64,000 nucleotides of DNA from Trichosphaerium sp. ATCC 40318 (GCA_038496445.1 JALMLS010000423.1:124001-188000), one strand, 5' to 3'; positions 292 through 64,000 are shown, numbered from the stretch's first letter. Translations and numbers: made by a program. The notes: generated by a model not told the origin, from the letters alone.

Positions 292-1921
292 TATCAATTG
301 AATGTACTCCAGAGAGTGCTTTTAACCCTTCATCTGTTATACTGCAACCTGCAAGATTAATCGAATGTACTCCAGCAAGTGCTTTTAACCCTTCATCTGT
401 GATACTGCGACACCTTCTAAGATTAATTGTATGTACTCCAGCAAGTGCTTTTAACCCTTCATCTGTTATACTGCAACCCGCAAGATTAATTGAATGTACT
501 CCAGCAAGTGCTTTTAACCCTTCATCTGTTATATGGCAATCTGCAAGATTAATTGTATGTACTCCAGAGAGTGCTTTTAACCCTTCATCTGTGATACTGC
601 GACACCTTCTAAGATTAATTGTATGTACTCCAGCAAGTGCTTTTAACCCTTCATCTGTTATATGGCAATCTGCAATATTAATTGTATGTACTCCAGCAAG
701 TGCTTTTAACCCTTCATCTGTTATACTGCAACCTGCAATATTAATTGTATGTACTCCAGCAAGTGCTTTTAACCCTTCATCTGTTATACTGCAATCTGCA
801 AGATTAATTGTATGTACTCCAGCAAGTGCTTTTAACCCTTCATCTGTTATACTGCAACCTGCAATATTAATTGTATGTACTCCAGCAAGTGCCTTGATAC
901 CTTCATCTGTTATTAGCCAACACCATGTAATATCAATTGAATGTACTCCAGAGAGTGCTTTTAACCCTTCATCTGTTATACTGCGACACCTTCTAAGATT
1001 AATTGTATGTACTCCAGCAAGTGCTTTTAACCCTTCATCTGTTATACTGCAACCTGCAATATTAATTGTATGTACTCCAGAGAGTGCTTTTAACCCTTCA
1101 TCTGTTATACTGCAATCTGCAATATTAATTGTATGTACTCCAGAGAGTGCTTTTAACCCTTCATCTGTTATTAGGCAACACCATGTAATATTAATTGAAT
1201 GTACTCCAGAGAGTGCTTTTAACCCTTCATCTGTTATACGGCAATCTGCAATATTAATTGTATGTACTCCAGCAAGTGCCTTGATACCTTCATCTGTTAT
1301 ACTGTGACATTTACTAATAGTAATTGTGTGTATGCCAGTAAATGACTTGAGGCCTTCATTTGTTATATTGGTTTCAATGAGCTCAATTTCAGTCACTCCA
1401 GTAAATGCTCTGGCAACCACATCAGAAATGGAGGTTCCAAAAAGTTTGATTCTTGAGTGTCGGAGAGTACTTGAATATTGTATAGCCACTAGAGCTTGAG
1501 AGGGTCTTGAAATACAAACACTATCATATCCGATAATGTCGTGAATGATAGAAGCAAGGCGATGACATGTCTGGCATGCTGCAATCCTTGCTTTCGTCGT
1601 TTTGAGCAAAATATATGCTAAAATCTCAGTCGGGAGGTCTAAAAGGTCACTTGTTTGGCAAGGCATAATCCTTGGTTTCGTCGTTTTAAGCAAAATATAT
1701 GCTAAAATCTCAGTCGGGAGGTCTAAAAGGTCACTTGTTTGGCAAGGCATAATCCTTGGTTTCATCGTTTTAAGCAAATTATATGCTAAAACCTCAGTCA
1801 GGAGGTCTAGGCCACGTGTTTGCCAAGGCGTAATCCTTGCTATCGTTTTTTGACAAATATGCGCTAAAATATCTATCAGGAGTCCTAAAAAGCTTTTCTT
1901 AACACTACAGTGAGTTAGCAT
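209..1921 (-). CDS. Intronless F-box/leucine-rich-repeat protein with tandemly repeated F-box-like segments
   Basis: ORF 209..1927 (first ATG at 1921). LLDLPTEILAYIL F-box motif repeated; about 17 cysteine-containing LRRs ITDEGLKAL(A/S)GVH(T/S)I(N/D)(I/L)xxCx. Confidence 0.85.
   Translation of the reverse strand: MLTHCSVKKSFLGLLIDILAHICQKTIARITPWQTRGLDLLTEVLAYNLLKTMKPRIMPCQTSDLLDLPTEILAYILLKTTKPRIMPCQTSDLLDLPTEILAYILLKTTKARIAACQTCHRLASIIHDIIGYDSVCISRPSQALVAIQYSSTLRHSRIKLFGTSISDVVARAFTGVTEIELIETNITNEGLKSFTGIHTITISKCHSITDEGIKALAGVHTINIADCRITDEGLKALSGVHSINITWCCLITDEGLKALSGVHTINIADCSITDEGLKALSGVHTINIAGCSITDEGLKALAGVHTINLRRCRSITDEGLKALSGVHSIDITWCWLITDEGIKALAGVHTINIAGCSITDEGLKALAGVHTINLADCSITDEGLKALAGVHTINIAGCSITDEGLKALAGVHTINIADCHITDEGLKALAGVHTINLRRCRSITDEGLKALSGVHTINLADCHITDEGLKALAGVHSINLAGCSITDEGLKALAGVHTINLRRCRSITDEGLKALAGVHSINLAGCSITDEGLKALSGVHSIDITDGSPTQQLQESLYILEDRYLRRHSM
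296..1305. repeat. Tandem 63/66-bp coding repeats (LRR units)
   Basis: Core AACCCTTCATCTGT recurs at 63 or 66 bp spacing with near-identical framework sequence. Confidence 0.95.
1585..1900. repeat. Tandem 81-bp repeats encoding F-box-like 27-aa units
   Basis: KPRIMPCQTSDLLDLPTEILAYILLKTT occurs twice nearly exactly, plus two diverged copies. Confidence 0.85.
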
Positions 1922-2199
1922 GCGCAAATAGACCTATTTTAAACATACGTTTGCTTTTTTGTGGTTAACCAGGATGGCACCTTCCTTTTTAACATCACGT
2001 GAGGCTTTAAGGGTAGTTTTGTTACTAAATAGTTGCGCTAGATAGTCCCGAAGTTTGACTTGACTAGACAAGACTGAGAAAACAAAGCGCGGCGTTGAAA
2101 AAAACTTACCTAACTTTTCGGTCAAATTCGGAATTTGACAGCACAATGCAATTCAAATAACCTAAAAACACTGAATACGAAGTACTGACGTACAGTACC

Positions 2200-5205: not shown

Positions 5206-5409
5206 CATAGTACCTACAGTCCAGGATTAAATAAAAACTTGAGTGGTTCTTTTTTTCAAAACGTACCTCATTATTTGGCGCAATCCCTTTGGATCGCCTT
5301 TGTCTATACATACAATTGGGGAGATGTCTTTCCAGTATAAAATTTATTAGTGGCGGGGACTTTAGCACAGCTGTAAAGCTGCACACCCTAGTGTGATAGT
5401 TTGATGCAA

Positions 5410-5585
5410 ATGTGCACTATGTGCCAAACAAATTTCAGGTCAAAAATCCATCTCCGGCTACTTCTCCTTGTTGCTTTCTTATATTGTATTATCAAGAAGC
5501 TCAAACTGGAAGCCTTACATCTGTAGGCTACAACGATAGAACGTTTCATCGTTTTGCGTTAGAGTCTGGTACAGTTCTATTCGTT
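5410..5585 (+). pseudogene. Degraded partial duplicate of exon 1 of the 3956 secreted-protein gene
   Basis: CTTCTCCTT...TTGTATTATCAAG(A)AGCTCAAACT...GAGTCTGG parallels 3960-4110 with indels and no intact reading frame. Confidence 0.5.
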
Positions 5586-5889
5586 CAAATCCCACTTTTT
5601 TTTTTCCCCCAACCCCACAGAATGAGCTTACGTTGCATTTCGCTTATAAAATGAGCAGTTTCAACACGTGGGAAACAGTAGAGAATTTGAACGAATAGAA
5701 CTGTATCTAAATTGGCGGGTGTACGTTCGTTCTTTTATAATTTCTTATCTTGTCATAGAATAATTAAACATGTTAAATTATACTTTCCCTTTGTGAGTAA
5801 CTTTGAAAATGGTTTTGTAAAGTTATGTTTATTTAAATAAAGTTGTTTAGAAATATCTCTTTTTTTTTATTTTGCAGGTTTAAGCGTCC

Positions 5890-8800
5890 TTAACTAAAAT
5901 TGCCACTACCAGCTTGATAACGTAAGCTTTGAAGTTTTTCATTGAAACTTTGTTCCATCCTTTCCATACGTAGTAGAATTTGAGCGTTCTGTCTTTCAAG
6001 TATTGTAGTCTTGAGTTGAAGAGCATCAACCTTTTCTTGAAGTCTATAAAAAAAATCAAAATCAAAATTTAGCTGCTTGTGGAACAACATCTGAGCCAAA
6101 ACTCTCAGTAATAGGAATAGTAAAAATATTAAACAGACTGAATACGAAATATCAATAAATAAACCAAAAGTAATCGACGTCTATAGAACAAACTGACACG
6201 TGGTGGATTTTTTTGGATTGTTGAGTTTTTGTTTCTTCAAAAAAAAATGGTAGTGACGTACTTTATTATCTCCTCCTCATGTACTCTGGAAGATTTTACT
6301 GTTTTTGCAATCAACGTGTCTGCAGATGGCAGATTTTCACGTGGCACTTTACCTTTCTTTATGCTGAATGTAGCCTAAAACAAAACAAAAAAATAAGTCC
6401 GTTTACATCACAACGTCAATACTTCAGTCTGTACTTTGCTTCAAAAAAAATGGTTGAAGGTTGAAGCTTACAAGCTCAGAGTGATATTATAATGAGTTCT
6501 CCAAGTTCTTTTTTTAAGAGCGAATGGAGGAACACAAAAAAAGGAGTATAGCACGTACTTTGCCTTTGATGCTTTTGGTTGATGACCCAATTATTGCCAC
6601 ACCACGTGCAAGACCACCACGTGGTGATTTCTTATTATTGATATCACTTTGATTATCATTCTCAGTCTTCTGTGGTATGTAAATAGTACCAGCATCAACA
6701 TCATCAATGGAAGTGCAGAAATGTTTCAATTTTGATGTCAAGTTAGTTAATTTATCTAACTTCGAGATAGAAGCAGGTGGTGTTGAAGGACCTTTGATGT
6801 ACTTGCCTAAAAGGTCGAATAGGTTAGACTAACCCAAAACTATATTATGTTTAAACAACTTACGTAATTGACGGACTTCTATAACTGTTTTGGAGCATGC
6901 TTGTTCACCTTCTTTGTCGATAGCAAATCCGCAAAAAATAAACGCTTGTTGTTCAGTGCTATTAAAAAAATGAGCTTAAGCGTCACTTCTTCATTTTGCC
7001 GTTTCGTACCATATTACAGCAGCGCTATTTCTCGCTGGCAAAGGAATAGGAACATCAACAAGAGTCCATGCAGAAAGTTCTAAGAAGTAGAAAAAATAAG
7101 AAAAAAGAAGGAAAAGTACACGAATTATCTTTGGTTATTGTTGAGTACCTGTATTAAACAATATGATATCATTGTAACTGTAAATAAGAAATGGGTGTTA
7201 ATAATCTAAGATACACAACAAGAAGTTCACATACGTTCTTCCTTCGCCATGACCTCCATAAAGAAGAATATGTTTACCAAAACGAGAAATTGCCATTGAA
7301 TGACGCATTCGAGGTACATGACCACTAGGTACGACATTATACCAATACTCCTCCTCTGAAACAAATATGTTAATACTACGTAGAAATCAATGATAGCGTA
7401 GGTACGCACTGAGGTCATAATAATGGCCATCATTAGAACAAGTGTTTCTCTCTGAAGCTCCGCCAAATAGAAACAGCTTCTTTCCGTTGTCAGTAGCCAT
7501 TAATAGCGCTGAGTATCTAGGTAGTGGGAAGCTACCATTACTTGATAGTTCCTTCCAAATATGTGTTTCTGTACAAGAGACCAGCGTCAGAAATCAAGAA
7601 GTTGGGAGGATGTAAAACACTTACCTGTATCAAAGCAATAAAGATTTCCATAATTTTCTTGTTTTTGCGGATTCTTCCTAGAGTAACCGCCAAAGATATA
7701 CATACATTTACCAGATTTACAAGCTGAATGAAAAGCGCGACCATGAGGCATATCTCCTGTACCAGTGACACGTGTAACAACAAAGGAATCTAAAAGACAA
7801 TCAACAAAAATCTTGTGTTAAAAAAGAAAACAAAAGTCAATGCAAGGTCAATTATTTTGCACGTGCTTGTGTTTAGCATGTATAAAACATCTGAGAATGA
7901 CTCATCTTTTCTTTTACCACCAAATATATAGAGAGTATCACCTATATGAACAGAAGAATGTCCAGAAAGTGCAGGCATTGCAACATCTCCTCTAATTTTT
8001 TTACGACGCCATTTGTTTGTATCTAGTCGAAAAAGTAAGTGATTGTTGACACTTTCTCTTATGTCACATACCAAGATAAAACAGGTATAAATCAGAGAAG
8101 TAAGAGTCTCCATCGAACCCTCCAAATAGAATTACTTTACGACCTACAAGATTACACGTGTGATGTGCTCTGGACACAGAAGTTAAAATACGATTCATGT
8201 GTAAGCTGAAACTGGTACTCACCTCGGCCTAGGACCTTTTGAAGTTACATGCTCGATCCAATATTTACGTAACATCTTACTCTTAAGATCAAGTATAAGC
8301 GTAAGGAAATGATCCCGTTGTCCTCTACAAAGACTTTAATTTTGAAGTAAAAAAAAAATCGTATAGGGATAACAAAAAACTCGCTTACTCTTCTGCGAAA
8401 CCAAAGACAAAAGATTCTCCAGTCATATAACTAAGTTTAGCAAAAGCTTTAGACTTGGATTCACCTATTTAATAAAAGAATAAGTACAAGAGAAAGCCGA
8501 AAATGAGTTGAAAAATCCTTCATACTTCCGGAACATTTCTCGACTTTACTGTGCTTTATAAGGAACAATGCTTGAAATCCTAGGGATTGTTTTCTTCTCA
8601 TAGTCTTATTTGCAGTAAAAAGAAGTAAATCAGACCAGATAAACACGTGAAAAGAAGACCCTGATTGACCTTTAATACATCTTATCTCCATCTCATCCAA
8701 TAACTGTCTACCATTCTTTACTAACTCAACCTTGTTCACAAGTCAGAATATATAGATGTTTGAAGTAAAGACATGATAAAGACAAAAGGCTGCTATCATG

Positions 8801-11572
8801 AGAAAGTGTACGTACAGTGCCAGGGTATCCAGTTAGTGTCTTAGCAACTTTAAGACCAAGTTTTGCTGTATCTGAAAGTTGCTTGGAGCTGTCAAGTTGT
8901 GTTGATACTTCTTCCATTTTAGAACACGCATTTTGCAAGTTTTCATAATCAGGATGGTCTGGTGATGTACGTTTAAGTAAATCTTTGATAAGAAGAACAA
9001 GTCGAAGAGGTCTTTGGATAGGCATGATAAGAAAAGAAGCATAATCTAAGCCTTTTGGGTCACTTTTGGTCGCCATCAACTACAACGCCAAGTTAGGTTT
9101 TTACAACGCGCTATTAACAAAAAACAAAACAAGCTATGTAAAGCTGCCACAAAAGATCCATAAAATGACTAAAGGGTGCCGTCACAGCCTTAAATTTCGA
9201 GTTGAATTCAGAAGTGTACTTTTTCTATTGCTGCGAATTCTTTGTTTTTCCTCTGTAGCCTCTTGTAAAGTAGGTTTGCTTTATCAAAGTTATTCACATA
9301 AGTCTTATACAACTTGAAAAATTGGAACTAAGTGAGAAGTCAGTAAACAAACCCAATCACAGTGATAATGCTGAGAAGCAAAGAAAAAAGCACGTGCATA
9401 TTTTAAGAAAACTTGACCAATTTTCGCCTCTGGTGTCCAGTTTGATACAATAGTCTCAATCTAGAATTATATCTGTTTAATGCAGTAACAAAGTATTGTA
9501 AATCCGTACTTCTGGCATAAAATGATGTTGATGGAATTGAAGAATTGTTTCAATGTTAGCAACTAACAAAGGTTGGCAAAAGTTATTAAATTTTTTAACT
9601 ACGTACACAACAACGCCTGATCCTTTTCGTCAATTATGCCCTTTAACGGTTTAATACCTTCCTAAATCACAGTTATAATCATTGAACGCTAACATATGAT
9701 CTTACTTCAACAAGGTATGTAAGGAACTTGATGTATTGCTAAAGCAAATGTTACTATCTGATTAATAAAAAACCCGTTATTACCTGCTCTGTGCTCAGTA
9801 GTTCTTGTGCTACACGAGCCACCTTTTCTTCTTTTGCGCTATTACTATTCTTACTACCTTCTTCGTCTTGACAAGTATCATATTAAGTCAGTAAAAGAAG
9901 ATGAACAGATCAAAAAAACTAACCATCAGCATCATCCTTTTTCACTTCAAGTGTATCCGCTTTACCCTCTTTCTCCCACCTAATATGCCTTTTTTGATTT
10001 TTCGCACGTGTTGTAGGAGACTTTGAAGACACAGAAGATTTTTTAGGTGCATCAGGCTATCATTGTGGTGAATGTCATGGTAAAACGCCAAAAGAAACTG
10101 TACCGATCCTTTTTTGTCTCTTATTCTCTCACGCGATTTAGATCTTTTAGGACCTTCTTTGTTCGCTCTTGGTTTTCTCGATTTCGGTGATAACGCAGAG
10201 CCTGCTCTTTTTCTTCTTCCATTATTAGTTGATCTTGCAGGTTCTAAGGTAGGAGGTTTATCAACTTCAACACGTGGAGACTCTTTATAGTCATCACTGT
10301 CATCATCATTGCTTTGTGCTAACTCCTTGGCTTCAATATTAGTTTCTCCACCCTCTTCACCTTGATTAAAAGCATTGCCTCCCTTATGTAAACGTTAGTA
10401 CGTCCTGTAAAGTGAAACATGACAACAAGACATTATTACATGACTAGTGTTACGTTGTTTAGGCTGTACCCTGCCGCCTATCTCCCATTTAAATTCTTTT
10501 TTTTTAGGTTCAACGGCTGCAGTTGCTTGTATTTTCTCGTGGAATGCTGTGAATATTTTTAACTTATCACGAACTTTTAGCTTAGACAAATCTACAAAGC
10601 AACATAAGAACCGACAAAAAGTAGAAAATAAAAGAACGAAAAAAATTTATCACGTGATAATTAAAAATGTTTCAAAACAAAAAAACAAAGCTAAGGATAC
10701 CATCGTATATGTGGACAGAAGGCTCGTCTGAGCGTGTTTTTGCAACTGGTTTACGTGTTATTTCCGGTGTGTCCATATCCGCATAATTCAATAAATCTTG
10801 TTCTACGCAGGTACGTGAATAATGCATTCCGATATAAAATGATAGTTGACATAAATTTCTAAACTAAGCATGTAATTGCGCACCCAAGCTACGTCTTCTG
10901 GCTTTACGTATTTCTTTTAGACTTGCTTTGTCCTTCTCCGCTAATTTATACAATAAGCAAACAACCGAAAAACTCGAAAAACATGCAAAAAAGAACGAAC
11001 AAAAAAAACAAATACAAAAAAAACATTTTCGTAATTTTTTTTGCGTTTTTTCGGTAGGTATATCACGTGTTTTAATAAAAACCGAAATAATTGTTAAAAA
11101 TGCCGAAATACTTCTCAAGAAAATTTCTTATCGCAATAAACAATATTTCTTGGAGCCACAGAGGAAGAAATCTGCTCGTTTGGATTTTGAGATAAAAAAA
11201 AAATACCGAAAACTCTTTTTTCTGTGTAGCCTTTAAAAATAGGATGTTAACATTCCATACCTACTACTGGCATCGATTTTGCTTTTGATTTATTATAATG
11301 ATCGTATTCTTCATCGTTAAATTCTTTCTTCTCTTTAGATTGCTCTCCTACGCTTGTAGGTTCATTTAATTCATTATAACTATCCGAATCGCTACTGAAG
11401 GTTTGGTCATGAGATCCATTGCGTTCTGCGGCTAAATCTTCCTCTCTACTCCCCTCAGATGACTCTTCGAAGTCCTCGCCGTATTGAATTGTTAGTTCAT
11501 CGTCAGCAGCACGTGCAGCCTCTGTAAATGCTTAGAAAACGTTACAAGTATGCACGTACCCATGTCTGCCAT
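5890..11572 (-). CDS. RhoGEF (DH-PH) protein with Kelch repeats and C-terminal coiled coil
   Basis: DH motifs (LDYASFLIMPIQRPLRLVLLIKDLLKRTSPDHPDY; GQVFLKYFQFFKLYKTYVNNF), PH exon (FHVFIWSDLLLF), Kelch exons (GHSSVHIGDTLYIFGG; PHGRAFHSAC). ATG at 11572; about 25 introns including two GC-AG. Confidence 0.85.
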
Positions 11573-38672: not shown

Positions 38673-39296
38673 TTTGCTGTGTTCATGTGAAGTGCCTTGC
38701 TTAAGTGTAGCCTTTAAGGCCGCATGGGGCCACTCACCGAAAAACTTATATGCGTGGCCAAGGTTGTTGATTAATGTTAATAGATCAGCGGTTGCCCGTA
38801 ACATGAGTACTTGTGGATGTAAGTTGGCTACTTATTTAGTGACAGACTTCCAATAGCAACGTAAAAATAGCGAATGCATGGCACTTTTCGCGAGAATGAG
38901 ATTAAGCGTTATTTGTAGCGAGCGTGTTAGGCTCTTGCTAGGTACTACAGCTATATGGTCGAAACGTTTGGCCATATGAAGCGCTCAGCCAGCTACTTTA
39001 ACCAAAGTTCGCAATTAATACTTAGGATTTAGGATTCGAAGTCCTGGTTTCCTTTAAGAATAGCTGAGATTTGATGGGCCGGTAAACCTAGAGTTGTACA
39101 AGGAGCACAAAGGCAGGCTTGATAGCAAACCATTCAATGGCTACATTCAAGACCTTAACAGATGGATTAACTGAACAAGATGCAGCTACAAACGTTAAGC
39201 CACGTACACCATAAGTTAATTATCAAGAAGTAGTGTTTGGGCCGCAAACCTGAGGTAAATACTTTAAATACTACAACATTATCGACGCACATACAA

Positions 39297-41673: not shown

Positions 41674-42846
41674 TTGTGTTTTTGGCTTTTTACTCAGGTT
41701 GTCGCTAACACAAATTTCTTTTTAAAGTCTCTTTCCAAACGTAAACAAAAGTTGGACAGCAAACCAGATTCTTTGAGATTATTGGATATTCCAAGTGAGC
41801 TTCAAACTTACATTTGTACCTTCAATGCACAAGTATTCACAAAATTCCACACTCTATCAAAGAGAGCAGCACTTAATACACACTTTGATGAAATGTTGCA
41901 ACCAAAAGGAATATGGATGCAATGGTATAAAAATGGAAACCTGAAGCAACAGTGCAGCAAAGTTAATGGTAAAAATCATGGCGAAAACAAAGGATGGCAT
42001 GAGAACAGACAACTAAAGTATCAGTATATGAGTGTTGATGGCAACAAACATGGCGTAGAAAAGGGATGGCATGAGAATGGACAACTTTCAGAGCAGTACA
42101 TGTGGGCCGATGGAAAACAACACGGTGAATGCAAAAATTGGTATGAGAATGGACAACTTGAGGAACAAACCATGTGGTTTGAGGATAAACAACATGGTGA
42201 AACTAAAGATTGGTACAATGATGGTCAACTAAAACAGCAGGGCGTGTGGATTGATGGTAAGCGACATGGTCAAAGTGAAGGATGGTATGAAAATGGACAA
42301 TTAAAGTTTCATAATATGTGGGTTGATGGTAAACGTCATGGTAAACAAAAAGAATGGCATGAGAATGGACAACTAAAGTACCAGAGCATGTGGGTAAATG
42401 GCAAACAACACGGTGAATGTAATGCATGGCGTAAGAATGGACAACTTGCGGATCAGTTCATGTGGGTTGATGGTAAACAACAAGGTGAATGCAAATCTTG
42501 GTATGAGAATGGACAACTTGAGGAACAATCCATGTGGTTTGAGGATAAACAACATGGTGAAGGTAAAGGTTGGTATGAGAATGGCCAACTAAAGTGTCAG
42601 GGCATGTGGTTTGAGGGTAAACAGCATGGTGAAATCAAAGGTTGGTACAATAATGGCCAACTAAAGTGTCAGGGCACGTGGTTTGAGGGTAAAAAGCATG
42701 GTGAACTCAAAGGTTGGTACAATAATGGGCATCTACAATTTAAGAGCTTGTGGGTAAATGATAAACAACATGGTGTAAGTAAAGGATGGCATGAGAATGG
42801 CCAACTAAAGCATCATTATATGTGGGTTGATGGTAAAAAGCAGTGA
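41674..42846 (+). CDS. Intronless F-box-like plus MORN-variant repeat protein (start unresolved)
   Basis: LLDIPSELQTYI; about 13 24-aa repeats W(Y/H)ENGQLxxQxMWxDGKxHGExKG; no in-frame ATG before the F-box-like motif; decayed repeats continue past the stop. Confidence 0.75.
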   Translation: MCFWLFTQVVANTNFFLKSLSKRKQKLDSKPDSLRLLDIPSELQTYICTFNAQVFTKFHTLSKRAALNTHFDEMLQPKGIWMQWYKNGNLKQQCSKVNGKNHGENKGWHENRQLKYQYMSVDGNKHGVEKGWHENGQLSEQYMWADGKQHGECKNWYENGQLEEQTMWFEDKQHGETKDWYNDGQLKQQGVWIDGKRHGQSEGWYENGQLKFHNMWVDGKRHGKQKEWHENGQLKYQSMWVNGKQHGECNAWRKNGQLADQFMWVDGKQQGECKSWYENGQLEEQSMWFEDKQHGEGKGWYENGQLKCQGMWFEGKQHGEIKGWYNNGQLKCQGTWFEGKKHGELKGWYNNGHLQFKSLWVNDKQHGVSKGWHENGQLKHHYMWVDGKKQ

Positions 42847-45572: not shown

Positions 45573-48500
45573 ACTAACTTCTCAAACTATTTTTATTCTT
45601 TACAAAACAACTTCACACTTGCAATTCATCTTTGGGTAACGCTTTTCATAGTCATTCTTGCATTTGAAAACATTTCAGGCTTCCGATTTAGCCTTTTATT
45701 GATGTTATTGCTTGTTTCTCTATGTCATTGTCCTCATCATTTTCATCCTTTTGGTTCTTTAATTTGCTTTCTAAGTATTTTACCTTTTCTTTCAAGTCCT
45801 TAACTTGTTGTTTTAAATCACCGTTTGTATCATCTATTGTTGATCCCTTGTTAATGCTTGAAATATCCACACTTGTTGTTCTTCTCTTAGAATTACTAGT
45901 TTCGGTGTCAAGCATCATGTAGTGTATGCGTGGTATTACCAAAGATAGTACTGACACAAAAGGTCCAAGCACAATACTTCCAGATCGTAACACGAACTTC
46001 AGTGTCCGATTCTCACCTCCAATCACCTACAAAGCGTTAATTTAGTATCCATAAATCCCATACAATAACATACTTGTACAATGCCTAATATGGCAATGAA
46101 GAAAGCGAGAGTGTAGACTGAGAATCCAATAAATCTATTGGAGAAAAACTATGTTAAAAAGATAAATGATAGCGCTTTTTTTACGTACTTGGACTCGTTG
46201 TATAGTACTGACTTTAGTTTCCATATTCTCACTGCCCAATATAGACCGTATATGATGATACCAATATTGAACACAGCCAATATACCAAAGAATATCTTGT
46301 CATTGTCTCCGAAAGTACAAACAAAGTAATCATCCGATAAAATATACGGTTTGGCTGGTTCTAGTACAGCACGTGAACGGCTTACTATTGTCCAAATAGA
46401 TAGGAGCACAACCTCTACTGCAACGATACCAGCAACAATAGGAATTATCATCATGTTTGTGACTTTAATTATTTCCAAAGTATCAACACGGAAAATCTGC
46501 CCAATACGATAGATCCGAGCAAACAATGATCCATAAGTCAACTACTCCTCTGTAAGCGATCGAAATCAAACTAAAAATAGAAAACGTACACTAAAACCTA
46601 TACAAAGCAACCATCGCAACATATTGCAATGAAAGTCGTCTGTATGTAGAGTCCAGAAAAAAACGGTTGAGTACATTGTGATTGAACCAATCTGTTTCAA
46701 TAATTAATCAAAGAGAAGTGGACTTAAAAGATACGTACCAAGGTGAGAACAACAAACAAAGGTTGTGAAGCACGTATTATTCGATTATTTTGGAATATGA
46801 TTACCCATATTACAAGCCCCATTGTCATTAAAATAATAAATGAAACCAGAGCAAGCACAACTCGTTCAGCTGTTGTTTCTGCAGAAAATTACTTAGCGTT
46901 AGTGACTAAACGTTCACACGTACTATACCACCCGTATGTGGTTTCACGTTCATCCCATTTAGGAGCTGGATATATGAAAGGTGTCGTGACAGCAAACAAA
47001 GGTGCTACAACTTGATAATTCAAGTCTTGATCCAATTGATAAGTAAGAGAGAATCTTCCTAAATTCTGTCCATACAAATCAAATTGAAACTCCCCACCAA
47101 AACTTTTCATGTTCATATTATTAATGGCATCTTGTATCTTATCTGTATCGAGAGAACTATTGATTGAACAAATAAATAAATCACGTGCGTTCTGATAAAA
47201 ACCCGTTTTGGTGTCGTACTTTGCTTTTTCAACAGAATACTGAACCATGTAGCCTGCAACATATCCTGTCATACCATGCTGGCCTGGAGATACACCAAAT
47301 CTTTCTCGGTACTTTTGCGCAAACAATTGAGGTGATGACAATGTGCCGTTACTAAGGAAGTGATAGTGTCTGATATTTGGATCGTCTTCATCGTAGATAT
47401 TGTCATGAAGATATTCATTCCACTAAGGAAAACCACTGTAAGTTCGCATTTATGGAACAAATTCTCACCATGTTTCCTGCATCCATTACGTATTTGATAT
47501 CCGAGCCTAAATTCTTAAAGTTCACAGGAAGAAGACAAGGGACTGAGAATAAGTATGCCTAAAAATGTGAGAATTAAGATATTTTTTTCTCCTTGCCTTT
47601 GCATTGAAATTCAATTCTCTTGCTATTCTCATAAGCGTTGCACATGATGTGACAGTACCACCAATCACCGCATCTATAGAAAAGAATCATTAAAGAAGAA
47701 ATGAAGAATGGAGATCGGTCTTACCTGGTTTCAAATCCTTAAGCTCCTCTACCATTTCTCGTACATCTGATTCTTGACCTTCAGGATCAACCCTGTCTCT
47801 GATTTCTTTTTGGTAAACTAAATCAAACCCCAAGAACGATATACCTCTAAGAGCGCCAACACCTATGCCTTTGCGAGATGCTGGGAGTTGTCAGTACCCA
47901 ATTGACACAATCGAACTTACTCTCCCAAAACAAGGCAACAGACTTCACATTCTGGATTGCCAATAGATTCAACGACTGATACATAGATACTTCTGCTGGA
48001 ATAAATATCTCAACAGTGTATGGCAATCGACGCCCAAATGGAACCTTGCAAGGAGGCCTCAGAGCTTCATCGCAAATATGATTCGTTGATTGTCCGGCTG
48101 CACCTGTGTTGGTGTTAACCACTGAAAAAGTTAAGTATCACTTACTCCATATAGAGTTGATTTTATATTCATTTGCAACGAGAGCAGCTGGTAATCCAAG
48201 TTCAGTTGAAAGTGGCTTAACAAAATGTTAAGTTTACTCTAAAATAAGTCTGACGTACAAGAAAAATCATGTTTACATTGCGCTCTGTAATAAGTACTCT
48301 TGTTGCATTAGCAGTAGCTTCGCCTGTAGGTTCTATAAAAAGTACTTTTAGAAAAGCAGTTTTTCAACACAAAACTGCACGTGTCTTCAACGTGAAGTGA
48401 GGGAGCGACCGTTTTAAATACTTTAAATAGTTTTGGTGTTGTTGTGGGTTCAAATGAATGTATAGCGCACCAACAATAGAGAATATAATTTCAACTGTAT

Positions 48501-48957
48501 AAAGAGATCCATTAATTAGTAGCCCTCCTCTTTCGTTTACCTTTGTATGTTAGAGTACTTTAAAATTGTTGTAATTTGTATACCGTGTCTCGCCACATCT
48601 CGTGACTGTTGCGTTGTAATATACAATTGTCGTGGAAACGAGGATACACGCTACCTATTCTGAACACCTTTTGGGTAGCTACAGCTACAATAATGAGGAG
48701 CATACATAAGAGCACAGCGTGCAGCATTTGTTTCTAGTTGATGTTATGTTGTATCCCAAACTGCAATATTGTGGACTATTGTTTCTACTCCGGCTCCGCA
48801 AACCAAAACCATCAGATATTACGTGTTTATTATCGTGGCAAGTTATTTAGCTTTGTTGCTGTACTACGATCTTTTGTTAAGTGAATCAAATAGGCATTAC
48901 AATCACATAATTAACCCGGGTGCCGGCCAATTAGAACCTCCATAAATTTATCACATC
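45573..48957. repeat. Left arm of an approximately 3.4-kb inverted duplication
   Basis: Reverse-complement match to 52991-56390, including introns and both flanks. Confidence 0.93.
45688..48727 (-). CDS. Family C GPCR (Venus-flytrap domain plus 7TM_3), copy 1
   Basis: Signal peptide; periplasmic-binding-like exons (VNERGGLLING; FGGEFQFDLYGQN); 7TM_3 hallmarks IIRASQPLF, YGSLFARIYRIGQIF, YNESK; C-terminal coiled coil. Confidence 0.88.
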
Positions 48958-49961
48958 ATGTTCTATTATACAACTTACATCGAATGTATTTATACAAAAG
49001 GTTCAGTCGTATCAGAAGGCAATACACCAACCTCGCATTCCACACTGTCACGCTATAAGAGAGTTCAAAATAACGAAATGTACAAAACAACATTTCTGCA
49101 CTTACGTTTCCATCAAGCATTTTTTCATTGTACTCACGTACGTTTCAGTATCAATCAACCCTATATTGCTAGGTAGTATCGGTATGCCGGTACACTATAC
49201 TTTTTGCCCTAAATATCACTCAAGTCACTGCATTTGAGGTGAGTATGGCGGTATCACAATCAGGCCATGTCTTCTCACGGGAAAACAACAGATACCACGG
49301 ATTGGGTCATTCATGCGACAAGGAGAAAGGTTCACCAGTTGAACATGTTCAAAGTAAGTACAGTATGATTGCAATCAAATAGGTGAAACTAACAAATGCG
49401 ATAGGCTGACGATGTGACTACCACCTAATGAAACCAATAAAGAATAACCACGTGATGTGATTAAACCGCCGTATCTCAGCAATCATGGATTGGTGGTAAA
49501 AAGTTGCAAGGTACATCTCAAAACATAAACTGTTTTGCGAAAAGAAACATTTTTACGGTTAAAGTTCTGTTTATTAAGTTTATCTCACTTAAAGATACAA
49601 GCTGCATGTTCACTCGGACCGCCAGGTTCATCCGGAGCAGGGTCTTGATGACGTGCTCATCATCAAGGGCAGTAACGTTCACTGAAGTGACTTCCTTACA
49701 AGAATGAAATCAAATTAAAAACCAACACTGGAAGTTAAGCACCTTATCATGGTAAAGCCTAAATACATAGGTAACTGTTTATTCTCTTTGAACACGGAAG
49801 TATTTTTCAATTAATACGCGGATTACCCAACGCGAAAAATAGGCTGCTAACATAAAAAGAACGAATAAACAACTTTGGAGGCACAGTTTTATTGCTTTGA
49901 TATGTTAAAGTTACATAATGCTACTGTTGATCAATAGGATGCGAAATGTTATTCTAGTCTT

Positions 49962-52069
49962 TTACTGCCAATTCAATTCACTTCTGTCAAACCTCAAACC
50001 GGGCCATCCGGTATCATTGTGAACGCTATGATGTGGCATAACATAGCCATACTTTGCATAGCTAAGTAGAAATGGTAACTTTGCAAAGTTACTTCTAAAT
50101 GTGCCAACCCATCCATCACAATCGCTCATCATTATCATATTCGCAATAACTTGAATAGTGGGTAAATGACCTGAACAAAAAAGTAAGAATTACATAAACT
50201 TGTAACAGAGAAAAACTAAGAAACAAAACGATTTAGCAAAAAGAGACCAAAAAAAAAAAAGAATGTCACGTAATGTGTAGATTGCTATGTTAAGACAGTA
50301 CTATCCAAGTATGCGCAGGGTGCAAACCTACGTATCCTTAAGCGTAAACATACAACAAAGTTCAACTAAAGCACGTGGAACACTTAAAAATTGAGCAGAA
50401 ATATATAAAAAGCACTAGATTCCTACTTGCTTACGCAAGACAGATAGTAAATTTAAGTAGGTTACCTAGATGTTTATATTTCTCTACAAGAGCAGACCCT
50501 TTGATATTTTCTCTCGGTTCTTCGTTGTATATAACTTCATAGCTTGTTGAATTTTTCATTATGTCTATAACCTCTGGATCATCTGTTGCTAAAAAAATCC
50601 TATTGACATTCTGCCCTTTAGTTTCGTTGAAATGTTTTTGTAGCTTTGTTATACTATCAATAAACCCTTCTATAGGATAAAGCTTATTCTCAGTATATCC
50701 ATCACCATGACGTATATGTAAACAAATTAAAGGATGCTGCCATTTGATTTTTTTTCGAATGTCCATTACTACCTCCATAACCTCAGGAAGTGGCTGCCAT
50801 ATAAAATGAAGAACCTGTGCATAGTACCAAAGAAGACCTCTAGATTTTAAAATAACATCAGTTTCAAGCGAGTACATCACAACAAGTAAAAAAACCCACG
50901 TGATTTCACTGAAGGACGTGTATTTTTTTTTGTTTGCTTTTTAGCGTACCTCTTAGTTTTGCCAAACTTAGTTGTAGGTTTAGTGATAACAGGCGAATCA
51001 GGATAGAATATATCATTGTCATTACTAATATTCAATCTGGAATCAAATGTGGGACAAGGAGTGAATTGATTAAAGAAGCATTCAAAGGTTTGCTTTGGGC
51101 ATAATGACATGTGGGCATATTTAGATAAGCTACCACGCTGAAGTGAAATAGTTCTATTACTCTCAAAAGAGGAGACCATAGCAGTAACCTAAGCGCAATT
51201 AAACAACGAATCAAGTACGGAGTTAACATCAAATCACTGACTGGAGCTATACGAGTTTACTATTTAAAATACACTAAATTAATCACTTACCACGCGCCAC
51301 ATGTCTGCACCAAGTCCTCCAAATCTTGGAGCAATTTGTAATAACCGATTGCATTTTGATTCCATTTGATTATTCCAAAGCCATTGTTGCATTCTCCACT
51401 TTAACTTACTATCAATATAGTCTTTTTCAGTTTGTATCCACGTGGTGTAGTGATCTTATATCGAAGTTAAAAAAATTCACTACAAGAATATGTGTGGTTG
51501 ACGCGGAATAGCGCCAATATTATTCAAAGCAACATGAAGCTTTTCACTTCATTGTCAGGTCGCTCTTTTTTTTCGCCAATGAGGTGTATTTGAGCCTGGA
51601 TGATACCAATGGTGCAAAGTAATAACAAGGATATACTTTAGAGCTAGGAAAAATAGTGCTATTCCGAGTCAACCACGAAATCCTTTCAGCGAGTTTGTCT
51701 ACTTTTTTTTTCAACCAACAATGAGAAACTCTTCAAATAAGCCTGTCAAACGTTTTAATAGGTAAACGTACTTATAAAATCGGCGTTTCCTACATCATGT
51801 CACTATTCAGAGATATTAATCGAAAAATACTTACCAGACGCTTTTAGTATCGGATTATCGCGTTCCCACGTGATTTTATGTTCGTCGAAGCTTTCTTCTG
51901 TTGTGTCACGTAAATTAACATCACGTGGTTCTTCGCCGCTGGTATCATCTACAGGCTCTACTATGAGGAGTATTGGGTTGTTATCAGTAAGAAGAGTTGC
52001 GTAATTAAGTAGAAACACTGTGATAAGGCCTACAGAAGCAAGGGTGATGATAGTCTTAGTACGCGCCAT
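49962..52069 (-). CDS. Alpha-1,6-fucosyltransferase-like (FUT8/NodZ, GT23) type II membrane protein
   Basis: N-terminal TM; motif I LHIRHGD, motif II RIFLATDD, motif III MSDCDGWVGTFRSN. Confidence 0.8.
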
Positions 52070-52990
52070 TGCCAATGCCCACGTGGCGACTGAAGATACA
52101 GGCGAACTTAATTATGGTACCCATTTAAGCCGTGAGCTTTGAGACAAGCATCACTAGTGGTCTTTCATCCAATAGAATTGCGTAGTATCAAATTATCGTT
52201 TCGCCACAGTGGTGAACTGTGAATACAATAACGACTCTGTGTTTTTCATACTATGCATCTTTACTACGTTGACCCAGTGATAGCACAATCTTGTTATAGC
52301 ATTACAGAATCTCTCTGACTAAATATGTACATTTTGCAGCCGTTCATTTCTATTATATCCATTGTTTCTGTTGAAAGGTCACTTTATAATTAACCGTCAC
52401 AATCTATTTCTACTATTTGTGTGCACGCACCATCTGTTGAAAGCCCTGTTTTCCCTGAAACGGTTTCAAGCCATGTGATAATATTAGTAACTGATAACGA
52501 TAATATGGTGCTGCCAATGCACAGCAGACAGGAGAGTAGTATACTCCCAATGTAACCTTGGAAAATTTGGCGCTGTAATGAACGTTCTATCCAAGCAAAA
52601 AACTAGCCTGAGACTATTGAAGTAGAAAAATTAGGTGCATGGTGTTAACGGAGGATATCTCACAAGTGCTCATTCACTTGGATACTGCACGTACTTATTG
52701 CTAAAGTAGCTAGCCACTACGTTACGGATGTGCATAACAGCATATAATCACAGAAGTTTACAAGAATGTTACCTGCCTTGTAGTCTCATTTACGTGGATG
52801 TTCCGAAAATTTTGTTTCCCCGCAATTCGCGAATTCTTGATTTAAATGCAGGCTTTTTTAGCGTATTCGCGAATTTTGGATTATCTCCCTTCTAAAAAGG
52901 GAAAGGAAGTTGTGTAGTCAGTTCGGGCGATTTTTGGTAACATCGCTTCAAAACAGAAGTAAAAAGGCTGGAAACATTTACAAAAATGAA

Positions 52991-55900
52991 GATGAGGTAA
53001 ATTTATAGAGGTTCTCATTGGCCCGGCACCCGGGTTAAATATGCTTGTTTGATTCACTTAAAAAAGATCGTAGTACAGCAGCAAAGCTATTAAATTTGCC
53101 ATGATAATAATGGTATGATATCTGATGTTTTTGTTTCCGAGCCGGAGTAGAAACAATAGTAGTACACATTTCTTAACAGTTTTCGCATACCACAAAATAT
53201 CTATTTTAAACAAATGCTGCACACTGTGCTCACATGTATGCTCCTCGTTATGGTAGCTCTAGCTACAGAAAAGGTGTTCAGAATAGGTAGCGTGTATCCT
53301 AGTGAAGGACGTTTCCGCGGCAATTCCATATTACAACGCAACAGTCACGAGATGTGGCGAGACACGGTATACAAATTACTACAATTTTAAGTATTTCTAA
53401 CATACAAAAAGGTAAACGAAAGAGGAGGGCTACTAATTAATGGATCTCTTTATACAGTCGAAATTATATTCACTCCAGTTGGTACGCTATACATTCATTT
53501 GAACCCACAACACCACCAAAACTTTCAAGTATTTAAAACGCTCGCTCCCTCACTTCACGTTGAAGACACGTGCAGTTTTGTGTTGAAAAACTGCTGTTCT
53601 AACAGTATTTTTTATAGAACCTACAGGCGAAGCTACTGCTAATGCAACAAGAGTACTTATTACAGAGCGCAATGTAAACATGATTTTTCTTGTACGTGAG
53701 CCTTATTTTAGAGTAAACTTAACATTTTGTTAAGCCACTTTCAACTGAACTTGGATTACCAGCTGCTCTCGTTGCAAATGAATATAAAATCAACTCTATA
53801 TGGGGTTAGTGATACTTAACTTTTTCAGTGGTTAACGTCAACACAGCTGCATCCGGACAATCAACAAATCTTATTTGTGATAAAGCTCTGAGGCCTCCTT
53901 GCAAGGTTCCATTTGGGCGTCGATTGCCATACACTATTGAGTTCCTTATTCCGAAAGAAATAGTTATGACCGAGCCATTGAATCTATTGGCAATCCAGAA
54001 TGTGAAGTCTGTTGCCTTGTTTTGGGAGAGTAAGTTCGATTGTGTTAATTGGGTACTGACAACTTCTAGCATCTCTCAGAGGCATAGGTGTTGGCGCTCT
54101 TAGAGGTATATCGTTCTTGGGGTTTGATTTAGTTTACCAAAAAGAAATCAGAGACAGGTTTGATCCCGAAGGTCAAGAATCAGATGTACGAGAAATGGTA
54201 GAGAAGCTTAAGGATTTGAAACCAGGTAAGACCGATCTCCATTCTTCATTTCTTCTTTACTGATTCTTTTTCTATAGATGTGGTGATTGGTGGCACTGTG
54301 ACGTCATGTGGAACGCTTATGAGAATAGCAAGAGAATTGAATTTCAATGCAAAGGCAAGAAGAAAAAAAATTCTTATTTCTCACATCTTTAGGCATACTT
54401 ATTGACAGTCCCTTGTCTTCTTCCTGCAAATCTTAAGAATATAGGCCCGGATATCAAATACGTAATGGATGCGGGAAACATGGTGAGAATTTGTTCTATA
54501 AATGCGAACTTACAGTGGTTTTCCTTAGTGGGATGAAAATCTTCAAAGCAATATCTACGATGAAGATGATCCAAATATCAGACACTATCACTTCCTTAGT
54601 AACGGCACATTGTCATCACCTCAATTGTTTGCGCAAAAGTACCGAGAAAGATTTGGTGTATCTCCAGGCCAGCATGGTATGACAGGATATGTCATAGGCT
54701 ACATGGTTCAGCATTCTGTTGAAAAAGCAAAGTACGACACCAGGTTTTTATCAGAACGCACGTGATTTATTTATTTGTTCAATCAATAGTTCTCTCGATA
54801 CAGATAAGATACAAGATGCCATTAATAATATGAACATGAAAAGTTTTGGTGGGGAGTTTCAATTTGATTTGTATGGACAGAATTTAGGAAGATTCTCTCT
54901 TACTTATCAATTGGATCAAGACTTGAATTATCAAGTTGTAGCACCTTTGTTTGCTGTCACGACACCTTTCATATATCCAGCTCCTAAGTGGGATGAACGT
55001 GAAACCACATACGGGTGGTATAGTACGTGTGAACGTTTAGTCACCAATTCTAAGCCATTTTCTGCAGAAACAACAGCTGAACGAGTTGTGCTTGCTCTGG
55101 TTTCATTTATTATTTTAATAACAATGGGGCTTGTAATATGGGTAATCATATTCCAAAATAATCGAATAATACGTGCTTCACAACCTTTGTTTGTTGTTCT
55201 CACCTTGGTACGTATCTTTTAAGTCCTTTAAGTACACTTCGCATGACTAACTATTGAAACAGATTGGTTCAATCATTATGTACTCAACTGTTTTTTTCTG
55301 GACTCTACATACAGACGACTTTCATTGCAATATGTTGCGATGGTTGCTTTGTATAGGTTTTAGTGTACGTTTACTATTTTTAGTTTGATTTCGATCGCTT
55401 ACAGAGGAGTAGTTGACTTATGGATCGTTGTTTGCTCGGATCTATCGTATTGGGCAGATTTTCCGTGTTGATACTTTGGAAATAATTAAAGTCACAAACA
55501 TGATGATAATTCCTATTGTTGCTGGTATTGTTGCAGTAGAGGTTGTGCTCCTATCTATTTGGACAATAGTAAGCCGTTCACGTGCAGTACTAGAACCAGC
55601 CAAACCGTATATTTTATCGGATGATTACTTTGTTTGTACTTTCGGAGACAATGACAAGATATTCTTTGGTATATTGGCTGTGTTCAATATTGGTATCATC
55701 ATATACGGTCTATATTGGGCAGTAAGAATATGGAAACTAAAGTCAGTACTATACAACGAGTCCAAGTACGTAAAAAAAGCGCTATCATTTATCTTTTTTA
55801 ACATAGTTTTTCTCCAATAGATTTATTGGATTCTCAGTCTACACTCTCGCTTTCTTCATTGCCATATTAGGCATTGTACAAGTATGTTATTGTATGGGAT

Positions 55901-56390
55901 TTACTGGATACTAAATTAACGCTTTGTAGGTGATTGGAGGTGATAATCGGACACTGAAGTTCGTGTTACGATCTGGAAGTATTGTGCTTGGACCTTTCGT
56001 GTCAGTACTATCTTTGGTAATACCACGCATGCACTACATGATGCTTGACACCGAAACAAGTATTTTTAAAAGAAAAACAGGAACAAGTATGGATCTTTCA
56101 AGTGCTACCAAGGGATCAACAGTAGATGATACAAACGGTGATTTAAAACAACAAGTTAAGGACTTGAAAGAAGAGGTAAAGTACCTAAAGAGCAAATTAG
56201 AGAACCTAAAGGATGAAAACGATGAGGACAATGATGTAGAGCAACCAGCGATAACATCACATACAAGAGAATAAAGTGGAAGCACTTAATGTTGTCTAAT
56301 GCAAGAATGACTACGAAAAGCGTTAGTTGCCCAAAGAGAATTGTAGTGAAGTTGTTTTGTAAGGAATAAAAATAGTTTGAGATGTTAGTT
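52991..56390. repeat. Right arm of the inverted duplication
   Basis: Reverse-complement match to 45573-48957. Confidence 0.93.
53214..56274 (+). CDS. Family C GPCR, copy 2
   Basis: Same exon structure and motifs as copy 1. Confidence 0.88.
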
Positions 56391-61121: not shown

Positions 61122-61206
61122 ACCACACCGCTTGGCAACAAACGACAATGCGTTTTAGTTTCCTTAAGTTAGAATTTCTATATCTTCGCCCTGTAAGGAG
61201 CATAGA

Positions 61207-64000
61207 ATGATACCTGCTGCATTGCGAGCAGTATCATTGGTTAGCTCGTTGTGGCAAGAAGAGGAGCATGTGTTAAAACATCAAGATGTTCTACAGGCTG
61301 CGTCTGTGGAAGAGATTGAGTATGCTACGTTACTAGGGCAAACAAAAGTACACCGTGTCTATTTTCAAGCATCGTTAACAGGCGTAGAGAGCTATGAATA
61401 AGGTCGAAAGCGTTTGCCGTATAGCTCAGAGCGACAAAGAAGTATTATTTGCTTGGATTGGTACGCTTTGTCTTTTAAGCAAACATGCTAATTTGACTAT
61501 TTACGCCCAGATACCTTGGAAGCATTTCACAGATCATTTTCTGCTTCTTTAGCAACGGTTTGTAAAAAAAACCGTATAGAAGACCAAATACATGACCTTT
61601 CAACTTTATTTACGTCTCATGTACGTTGTACACAGTAATTCTAATTATCCGCTCCCATAACAACCAATATATAAAAACCCTTAAACATGCGGTCTGCAGC
61701 GCGTTTTATTGACTTTAACGCAAGGAGTCGGATTTTAAAGTGTACGTAAAGTATGTAAGTAGCTACGACAAGAAAGTGGCCATGTGCGATCAATTAGAAG
61801 CGAATAATGATTTATTCGAGCAGTTTTTAATGGCACGTGAGAACAACCTATTTCCTTTTTTATTTTTTAGGCAGTTTTTCGGTTTTTTGGATCTTTTTTT
61901 ATGTTAGGTTGTACACATTTACTAACAGTTTTACGAAGGAGTTCTCTGAGCAATCAGGTGGTTTTAGTCTTCGAGATGCATTATTGAGGCCACTACAAAG
62001 ATTTGCAGAGTACATTGTGTTGTTGAAGGTAGACAACGAAAAAAACCGTGTTTGGATGTTTTTATTCTAATGTTGTTGTTTGTTTAGGACTTAACGAGTT
62101 GTGAAGATGTTTCAAAAGAACTTGCATCCAGTTTACAAGAGGTATGTGGTTAAATAAGTCAGTTAAAAAACATTAACGTTATTTTTTTTCAATTTTAAAA
62201 GGCATGCTCAATCTTCACTACTATATCCTATCACACGAATAATGAAATGGCTATAGTATCTGAATCTACTCTCACTATTGAGAGAAAAAGAATTTCAGCA
62301 CGACATGGTGTTGTCAAGGTATTTATTAACAGAAATGTCCAACCGTTTTTTGTAACTGTTTTTTTCTATGGCAGATATTTGATTCAAAAAAGAAAGTTAT
62401 GGTACCAGTCGATTTTTCAAATGTAATAGTAGCAGAAAAGATGGTGGGTTTATCTACAAAAATTGCAGGTAAGCTTGATGCTATAAAGGATCTTGAGGTT
62501 TTCACGGTCACATAAAAAATTGTTCACAAGTCGTTAATTTTTTTTAGATTTTTATGCTTGTCATGTCAGTGGTATCAAGTTTTTGATGAAACAATTTGAT
62601 TTGAAACCTGAATCTCTCGAATTTTGGAGAAAAGAAGTTGCTATTTTAAATAATCTACCACACCACGCTAATATAATTCGGTACAACAATCAAAATCTTT
62701 TTTATTTTTTTACCAGTGAAAACCGAAAGTTGTTTTTTGTTAGAAAACATTGTCACGTGAACTGTTCACACCAAACTTTTAAAAAACGTCCGTGAACACT
62801 TATAACAAAGGTGATAGAGCCTGTTTTTTTGTTTTATTTGAACGTACAGTGACACTTTGCTTGTATTTTTTAACCAAGCATTTGTAGTAATAGAGTAATT
62901 ACTCAGTTTTGTTGTAGATATGTCTATAGCTCCGAGAAAGGTCAGCAAGTTCGTATCTTCTTGGGTTACTATTCAACAACACTACGCGCCATTTTTGATG
63001 ATAGAAGGGTATGTTTGTAATGATCCTGGGGTGAAACGACATTATATGAACGAAATTCTATTTTTTTCGAATTAACTTTGTTTGTGCTAAATATTACCCT
63101 TGTAGCGGCGAAATGTTCCTTTTACACTTGATGAGATTATTATTTTACTCAAAAATATTCTACGTGGTCTACAATTTTTACATACCTATGATATAGTCTA
63201 CAGGAACCTAAGTATTGACAACGTACGTAGTATTTTTTGTTTTGTGGGTTTTTTTAATGTTTTTTGTATCTACTCGAAAAGTTGTGTATTTTGGTTTAAA
63301 TGTCCGCTGTCAACTGATTACACGCTTTTAGTTATTTGTTGAGAATAATTCTTTGGGTGCTATTGCGACTTGCGTGTTGGGTAATTTAGACTACGCTAAA
63401 CCAATTACAGCCAATATCAAGGCCAAAACCAATATTGGCAAGCCGTGTACGTAATATCGATCGTTGACGTTCAGAAAAAATTGTTCTGATCAAATTCTTA
63501 GCCTACTCTGCTCCAGAAGTACTTGGATCAAAAAACAGAGATAATTACTCATTTTATGCTGACAGTAAGTCCATCAACTTTTTTGCTTGTTAATAAACCA
63601 ACCGGACTGTGTTATTAACACAAGTACACCGAAGACTCGTCTCCTCTAACTTTTGTTAAGTTTGGTCTTTGGGAATGGTTATATACGCTCTAATTAGCTT
63701 AAAAATACCTTATGAATCAAGATCATACAATATACTACCAGAACTTGAAGCTGGACGAACACCACAGCTACCAAAAGGTAATTAACCATCAAGATGAGAC
63801 TTTTATACATAAGAGAACTAAAACATTGTTAGATTTGCCTAAAGAGAAAAAATTCTTGGCGGAACTCTATCGACAATGTACAAATTTTGTTCCTCAGGTA
63901 TGTCACCCTTGATGTTGGTTGCAATACCACATATGTCTGTTCATAACACATACTGATTTATTGAAGGAACGGCCGTCTATAGAAACGCTACAAAAGGCAT
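61207..64000 (+). CDS. RhoGEF (DH) plus kinase-like domain protein, truncated by the window end
   Basis: DH motif LRDALLRPLQRFAEYIVLLK; kinase-fold exons MKQF...EVAILNNLPHHANII, ILRGLQFLH..IVYRNLSIDN, YSAPEV, WSLGMVIY. Confidence 0.8.

Follow-up and report, generated by a model that had tools for sequence, protein, structure and literature searches.

Why should one palindromic hexamer, CACGTG, recur about once per kilobase (kb) in the exons, introns and intergenic DNA of a eukaryotic genome? The question is raised by a stretch of 64,000 nucleotides (nt) from Trichosphaerium sp. ATCC 40318 (GCA_038496445.1 JALMLS010000423.1:124001-188000), called here the window, a word that always means this stretch at its full length. 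In bacteria, the over-representation of a single palindrome reaching synonymous sites is well described, the examples being HIP1, Dcm/Vsr and the uptake sequences; for the eukaryotic nucleus, no description of a CACGTG excess across the genome turned up in a full-text search of the literature, incomplete in its coverage, and a paper on Amphimedon mentions no more than numerous E-box motifs in open chromatin. An earlier note on this DNA, made from the sequence alone, had drawn the parallel with the cyanobacterial HIP1, a highly iterated palindrome of sequence GCGATCGC (Elhai, 2015, PMC4390886). We find that CACGTG is a real over-represented duplex hexamer, genome-wide, and that its excess is specific to the hexamer, coupled to the palindrome and blind to frame, strand and compartment. 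The analysis covers this single window, in which the guanine plus cytosine (GC) content is 37.2% and not about 34% as the earlier note had estimated, and it has RNA support over one 6-kb stretch.

Frequency and specificity of the hexamer

The window holds exactly 63 copies of CACGTG, dispersed from 1813 to 62759 without assigned strand, all with unique flanks and at a mean spacing of 983 nt. The earlier note had counted at least 63, and each of the 17 positions that it had named as examples does carry the hexamer. It had also expected about six copies at its estimated GC content; base composition gives 7.6 copies and dinucleotide-preserving shuffles (n = 100) give 10.0, with a standard deviation of 3.5 and a maximum of 20. 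With strands pooled, the expectations under Markov models of orders 0, 1, 2, 3 and 4 are 7.6, 9.8, 11.6, 17.9 and 29.8, respectively, and at each of these orders CACGTG ranks first among the 4096 hexamers, its observed/expected ratio going from 6.5 at order 1 to 2.1 at order 4 (z about 6). The order-4 model conditions on CACGT, ACGTG and ACGT, and the disappearance of the excess under such conditioning, the outcome that the earlier note had set in advance as counting against its observation, does not occur. In fact, order 4 understates the effect, because the counts of the half-sites mostly come from the full site. The base G follows CACGT in 63 of 94 cases and the other NACGT pentamers in 35 of 215 (odds ratio 10.5, P = 5e-18), and a background in which the flanks are independent outside the full site predicts 6.0 copies, so that the 63 observed amount to an approximately tenfold excess. 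Overall, CACGTG exceeds expectation six- to tenfold, at about one site per kb, and it thus shows the frequency behaviour of a HIP1-type sequence, namely that of a perfect palindrome occurring about once per kb and far above Markov expectation.

The excess is not shared by other palindromes of the same composition, among which GACGTC is found 7 times (the earlier note had given about seven), GTGCAC 11 times, CAGCTG 17 times and GTCGAC once; low-order composition is therefore ruled out as its source, by these normal counts together with the models of orders 1-4 and the dinucleotide shuffles. The excess of TACGTA and GTACGT, which also contain ACGT, is gone at Markov orders of 2 and above. A motif carried by repeats or transposons is ruled out as well, since the 63 flanks are alike over no more than one or two bases, and the sole paired copies are three pairs of sites from one inverted duplication. 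Spacing is near random (coefficient of variation, CV, 0.83), and the number of copies per 4-kb bin, from 1 to 9, is over-dispersed (variance/mean 1.9, P = 0.02), with the densest part, 18 copies, lying within 4-12 kb; the CV and the over-dispersed bins exclude a regularly spaced architectural element.

The one-letter neighbours of CACGTG have observed/expected ratios, at order 1, from 0.52 to 1.42, and no class of them is clearly depleted, the counts being small. The lower end belongs to GACGTG/CACGTC (8 copies vs 15.5 expected), and CACTTG/CAAGTG is found 56 times, with 41 expected.

Exons, introns, spacers and codon choice

The compartments in which the sites lie are best seen where RNA contigs were aligned, at 4200-10199, with splice joints taken from the contigs of four runs. 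These contigs delineate a gene on the minus strand that is interrupted by no fewer than 15 short introns of the GT-AG kind (49-218 nt, mostly 49-85 nt), and whose joined exons give an open frame of 684 codons comprising a RhoGEF end and Kelch-like repeats; this known part of the RhoGEF-Kelch coding sequence occupies 15 exons at 5893..9079 on the minus strand. Six CACGTG copies fall in its RNA-verified coding exons (6338, 6603, 6618, 7769, 8155 and 8644), as the earlier note had maintained for coding exons in general, and two in its introns (6197 and 7860). Four of the six exonic copies are read as NCA-CGT-GNN, one as CAC-GTG and one as NNC-ACG-TGN. On the other side of a spacer, the plus-strand gene A, interrupted by two GT..AG introns (4463-4511 and 4693-4743), has two more copies in its exons (4246 and 4657). 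The spacer, which separates convergent 3' ends, contains a copy of its own at 5665..5670 (no strand): the RhoGEF-Kelch gene ends near 5842, RNA coverage is none from about 5200 to about 5800, and the site, lying between two 3' ends, is therefore not a promoter site. The distribution over exons, introns and intergenic DNA that the earlier note had described is thus borne out by the RNA contigs, and the confinement to promoters that it had named as the contrary outcome is not seen, with sites that are exonic, intronic and between 3' ends. These same sites rule out a promoter-only motif.

Splice signals are also discarded as the source, as CACGTG lies within the splice signal of only one of 15 verified introns. 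This is the GC-AG intron at 7790-7866 (minus strand), in which the copy at 7860..7866 forms the 5' splice site GCACGTG. Among the 5' splice sites of the 15 verified introns, in the region 5842-9220, GTACGT is present in 5, besides GTAAGT and GTATGT. This consensus is unusual, and GTACGT/ACGTAC is itself 3.6-fold enriched across the window; the excess of TACGTA, GTACGT and ACGTAC is explained by GTACGT being a 5' splice consensus. Furthermore, the exonic CACGTG copies recur without any difference in public contigs from four independent runs, which bear three organism labels, an agreement by which assembly errors can be set aside.

Shuffles preserving both the amino-acid sequence and the codon usage leave 0.9 CACGTG expected in the RhoGEF-Kelch coding sequence, where 6 are observed (P < 0.0005), and 1.18 expected in six verified coding sequences pooled, where 9 are observed (P < 0.0005). 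The claim of the earlier note that promoter E-boxes or G-boxes cannot explain all the sites is supported on several sides: by the six exonic copies, by the one between 3' ends, by the equal density of the compartments described below and by the excess that remains after synonymous shuffling (9 vs 1.2). Over the whole window, coding DNA was delimited by a codon-likelihood mask, which is crude and reaches on the verified gene a sensitivity of 58% and a specificity of 85%. Coding-like DNA so defined (22.8 kb) contains 23 copies, 1.01 per kb, with an order-1 expectation of 2.6, and non-coding-like DNA (41.2 kb) contains 0.90 per kb, with an order-1 expectation of 7.0; the two differ in GC by 2 points only. 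CACGTG is hence present in coding and non-coding DNA without a repeat as carrier, as a HIP1-type sequence is, and it does not show the concentration in promoters and enhancers that is typical of E-boxes.

Codon choice was followed in about 6000 coding-like codons. Arginine is encoded by CGT in 18 of 24 NCA_R_G contexts vs 48 of 186 elsewhere (P = 4e-6), the dipeptide His-Val by CAC-GTG in 3 of 9 cases vs 0.31 expected (P = 0.003), and threonine by ACG in 3 of 5 NNC_T_TGN contexts vs 7% overall (P = 0.004). Synonymous choice is thus pulled towards CACGTG in all three reading phases, and these context-dependent counts, together with the synonymous shuffles, rule out a preference for codons or amino acids as the origin of the excess. 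The equal density of the two compartments and the three-phase shift of codons imply that the force works on the DNA, whatever the frame or the compartment. The excess is thus not accounted for by E-boxes in promoters, by splice signals, by codon usage or by the base composition.

Outside the coding sites the hexamer has preferred neighbours. The half-flank AT is found at non-coding-like sites in 18 of 72 cases vs a background of 8% (P = 1e-5), and in the window TCACGTGA occurs 11 times and the extended palindrome ATCACGTGAT 4 times (10649..10658, 13962-13971, 23876-23885 and 37784-37793, no strand). A CACGTG core with flanks typical of E-box factors is therefore found in non-coding-like DNA, and no flank preference was seen at coding CACGTG sites. 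The CpG observed/expected ratio is 0.64 in coding-like and 0.98 in non-coding-like DNA; the low value of the former could reflect gene-body methylation or merely codon usage. Positions 28001-32000 are distinct in composition, with a GC content of 41.4%, 189 CpG vs some 80-150 in each of the remaining 4-kb bins, and little coding-like DNA.

Repeats, duplicated arms and giant-virus-like genes

Repeated sequences offer a view of the direction in which single sites have changed. One CACGTG (42675..42680, plus strand) lies in a MORN_2 array of 72-nt repeats, and the register that it occupies reads CATGTG in 7 of the 13 MORN units; in particular, the neighbouring unit has CATGTG at 42603, and its flanks are identical to those of the site over the 30 nt shown. 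Judging from this alignment of units, the site probably arose by a T>C change, by which the methionine kept in most units was replaced by threonine. A gain of this kind has the direction predicted by a repair bias from T:G to C:G. A second case is provided by three tandem 84-nt repeats at 1565-1816, 76-89% identical to the first copy, in the 5' part of an F-box/LRR open reading frame. Here CACGTG closes the third repeat (1813..1818, minus strand) and the other two repeat junctions read CACTTG; the majority of two to one, which is all that polarizes the change, suggests a T>G gain, and an indel of 3 nt adjoins the site.

The inverted duplication (45637..56325, no strand) has arms at 45637-48875 and 53062-56325 that are 80-100% complementary, mostly 94-98%, and that hold paired CACGTG copies at 46370/55579, 47182/54759 and 48378/53567. 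No CACGTG is present in one arm only of this duplication. Likewise, no site toggles between the duplication arms or between the population variants of an environmental locus described below, because their divergence is too low. The arms encode exons of a class C G-protein-coupled receptor (7tm_3 and periplasmic-binding-like domains), and the 4-kb centre carries a gene for a FUT8/NodZ-like fucosyltransferase (50431-51179, minus strand).

Within this otherwise intron-dense region stand intronless genes with F-box and LRR_6 domains and an intronless gene of MORN_2 repeats (209-1927, minus; 14356-15183, 39237-40421 and 41674-42846, plus). The nearest relatives of the encoded repeat proteins are giant-virus-like and MMETSP proteins, at no more than 47% identity in the best alignment, which is of partial coverage. 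For one open reading frame of the window, a look-up of exact proteins gave no match. The intronless genes contain 3 CACGTG in 5.8 kb vs 6 in 2.05 kb of the intron-rich gene (P = 0.012), and they are above their own null, for which 0.27 would be expected. The lower density in these genes, which are probably younger DNA, fits an accumulation of sites with residence time. A giant-virus-like contig bearing a homologous F-box/LRR gene has 2 CACGTG in 18 kb and no excess. The metagenome contig L001, which carries a homologue, looks like a giant virus by its densely packed open reading frames, by the presence of RNA_pol_N and thymidylate synthase and by its GC content of 29%.

Used as a query against metagenome contigs, a RhoGEF exon retrieved 40 environmental eukaryote loci, most of which have no excess of CACGTG: the loci with GC of at least 0.43 contain 24 copies vs 34 expected, and the AT-rich contigs about 22 vs 7.9 expected at order 1 (both summed over rows). 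One marine eukaryote locus, represented by L023, L034, L035, L036 and L038, has 9 distinct copies in about 7 kb after merging, at a GC content of about 41%; L038 alone has 7 vs 1.96 expected, a number reached by 2 of 200 shuffles. The variants of this locus are 97.7-99.6% identical and have long open reading frames, and the 9 sites are conserved among all of them. The excess at the marine locus implies that the trait is not unique to this genome.

Finally, towards the end of the window lies a cluster of tRNA genes, all on the minus strand (57487-57559, 59397-59469 and 60221-60292), which are the only Rfam matches. It consists of a tRNA-Met(CAT) and of two near-identical tRNA-Asp(GTC), about 820 nt apart.

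The force behind the sites and its known counterparts

A pattern specific to one hexamer, coupled to its palindrome and indifferent to frame, strand and compartment requires a dimeric protein that recognizes the duplex, and a force strong enough to bend codon choice. The earlier note had proposed, for CACGTG, either a methyltransferase/repair system specific to it or an abundant protein binding it. A model for such a force exists in the very-short-patch repair of Escherichia coli, Dcm/Vsr, in which a methylated palindrome (CCWGG) gains copies through the correction of T:G to C:G. Our tentative preference goes to a mutational or repair bias tied to the sequence, resembling the one put forward for HIP1 and the one established for Dcm/Vsr. 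Such a force would recognize the palindrome in the duplex as one unit, the way a dimeric protein does, and so make or keep CACGTG; the central CpG would be methylated, T:G mismatches arising in CAYGTG would be corrected towards C:G, and sequences one letter away would become sites faster than existing sites are lost, and this equally in exons, introns and spacers. The action of a mutation or repair bias instead of selection, the involvement of methylation and the nature of the enzymes are the parts of this scheme that we infer. In its favour are the hexamer-specific excess with its coupled flanks, the indifference of the sites to compartment and reading frame, the site between convergent 3' ends, the T>C change that replaced a conserved methionine, the lower density in DNA that is probably younger and the lack of an excess in giant-virus contigs with homologous F-box/LRR genes.

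Several observations weigh against a repair bias. CATGTG/CACATG, the product of deamination and the expected substrate of a Vsr-type process, which predicts its depletion, is not depleted in the window (37 copies, where order 1 predicts 34 and order 3 predicts 25.7), and the CpG ratio of 0.98 in non-coding-like DNA gives no sign of a strong methylation-driven decay of CpG. The change from CACTTG to CACGTG is a transversion and not of the Vsr type, and the polarized events number two, too few to decide. Moreover, the AT or T flank of the non-coding sites, with its four copies of ATCACGTGAT, fits factors of the basic helix-loop-helix leucine zipper (bHLH-Zip) class and is not explained by repair. 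The comparison of compartments relies on a crude mask, and the whole picture on one window and one RNA-verified gene.

A more explicit version of the repair bias, unlikely as it stands, would be an equivalent of HIP1 in a eukaryote, in which a C5 methyltransferase of bacterial or viral type, possibly acquired horizontally by a genome rich in giant-virus-like genes, would methylate CACGTG and, together with a Vsr-like mismatch nuclease and by correction of T:G to C:G, would convert neighbours of the CATGTG type to CACGTG across the nuclear genome, bending codons and amino acids. Were it true, the density of CACGTG would be a clock for the residence time of foreign DNA. More generally, if a drive by repair or methylation is at work, one pair of sequence-specific enzymes would be enough to remodel the genome of a eukaryote, along with codon usage and some of its proteins, and the density of sites could date acquired DNA, giant-virus insertions included.

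The chief alternative, possible if somewhat doubtful, is that the sites are kept, by selection or by protection, by an abundant protein binding CACGTG, either a bHLH-Zip factor of the Cbf1, USF or TFE kind or another dimeric architectural factor. The sites would then persist because their binding is useful for chromatin organization or for regulation within gene bodies, or because mutation is rarer in DNA that is bound, and the excess would be a cistrome under selection or protection and not a product of repair. In support, the hexamer is the canonical class-B E-box or G-box, the non-coding sites have the T/AT flank (AT in 18 of 72, P = 1e-5; ATCACGTGAT four times), and the density is uneven from gene to gene, as in homotypic clusters (variance/mean 1.9, with 18 sites between 4 and 12 kb). 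However, coding DNA is as dense in sites as non-coding DNA and the codons are shifted in all three phases, one gain replaces a conserved methionine, one site lies between two 3' ends, and the spacing is irregular (CV 0.83). At about one site per kb, furthermore, the sites are very many, a heavy load for selection acting site by site, and protection would require a loss 6- to 10-fold lower at all six positions, with CpG not strongly depleted. If such a protein is nonetheless responsible, it constitutes an unusually dense genome-wide binding system.

Another molecular drive, acting through biased gene conversion, through a recombination-linked transmission of CACGTG alleles or through the repair of breaks made by a site-specific nuclease, seems to us improbable. 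It would leave the same signature, blind to compartment and frame, and the density near 1 per kb is that of the uptake sequences, but hotspot motifs are usually eroded and not enriched, and the window contains no pointer to a nuclease or to recombination. We know of no drive system of this kind, based on conversion or uptake, in eukaryotes.

There is very little room left for a sum of ordinary causes, in which regulatory E-boxes, the ACGT-rich 5' splice signal GTACGT, preferences for codons or dipeptides and compositional heterogeneity would together produce the excess, and this account is largely refuted. It can draw on the 3.6-fold enrichment of GTACGT, the consensus at the 5' splice site of 5 of the 15 introns, on the GC-AG intron beginning with GCACGTG and on the mild mean excess of AT-rich environmental contigs (about 22 vs 7.9). 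Against this, the excess survives conditioning at order 4 and shuffles preserving amino acids and codons, the hexamer is in the splice signal of only 1 of 15 introns, palindromes of the same composition are not inflated and the compartments differ in GC by 2 points. An artefact of assembly or sequencing, for which no point was found, is hardly credible, given that the exonic sites are identical in the contigs of four runs and that the flanks are unique.

Whether the sites are due to a repair bias or to a binding protein, analyses of motif enrichment in this organism need a corrected background, as they will otherwise return E-boxes everywhere.

Among the known systems to which the recurrence of CACGTG can be compared are the uptake sequences, the uptake signal sequence (USS) of Haemophilus and the DNA uptake sequence (DUS) of Neisseria, which have 9-12 nt, are not palindromes and depend on natural transformation. 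CACGTG shares with them the nature of a short motif found about once per kb in coding and non-coding DNA, and differs in being shorter and palindromic; USS and DUS spread by drive and not by local function. To our knowledge, nothing comparable to uptake sequences exists in eukaryotes.

With the class-B E-box/G-box, the target of bHLH-Zip and basic leucine zipper (bZIP) proteins such as Myc/Max, USF, TFE/MITF, Cbf1, Pho4 and GBF, the core is identical and the non-coding copies share the preference for T/AT flanks. E-boxes, however, concentrate in promoters and enhancers, whereas here the coding density is equal, codons are shifted and sites occur in introns and in a spacer between 3' ends.

The likeness to Dcm/Vsr lies in the one probable gain from CATGTG to CACGTG. 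Unlike in that system, the neighbour containing T lacks the predicted depletion. CACGTG is, moreover, in far larger excess here than CCWGG is in E. coli.

HIP1, for which a methylation-dependent ratchet of mismatch repair has been proposed (PMC4390886), is a further parallel. CACGTG departs from it in being a hexamer instead of an octamer, in belonging to a eukaryotic nuclear genome with spliceosomal introns and in having one-letter deviants without a clear bias. The case of HIP1 is defined by its link to an orphan methyltransferase, and the analogy drawn here, on the strength of the sequence, covers frequency, palindromy and blindness to compartment. In both, a short perfect palindrome, about one per kb and far above Markov expectation, is spread through genic and intergenic DNA with no mobile repeat to carry it, and weak palindromic extensions surround its core.

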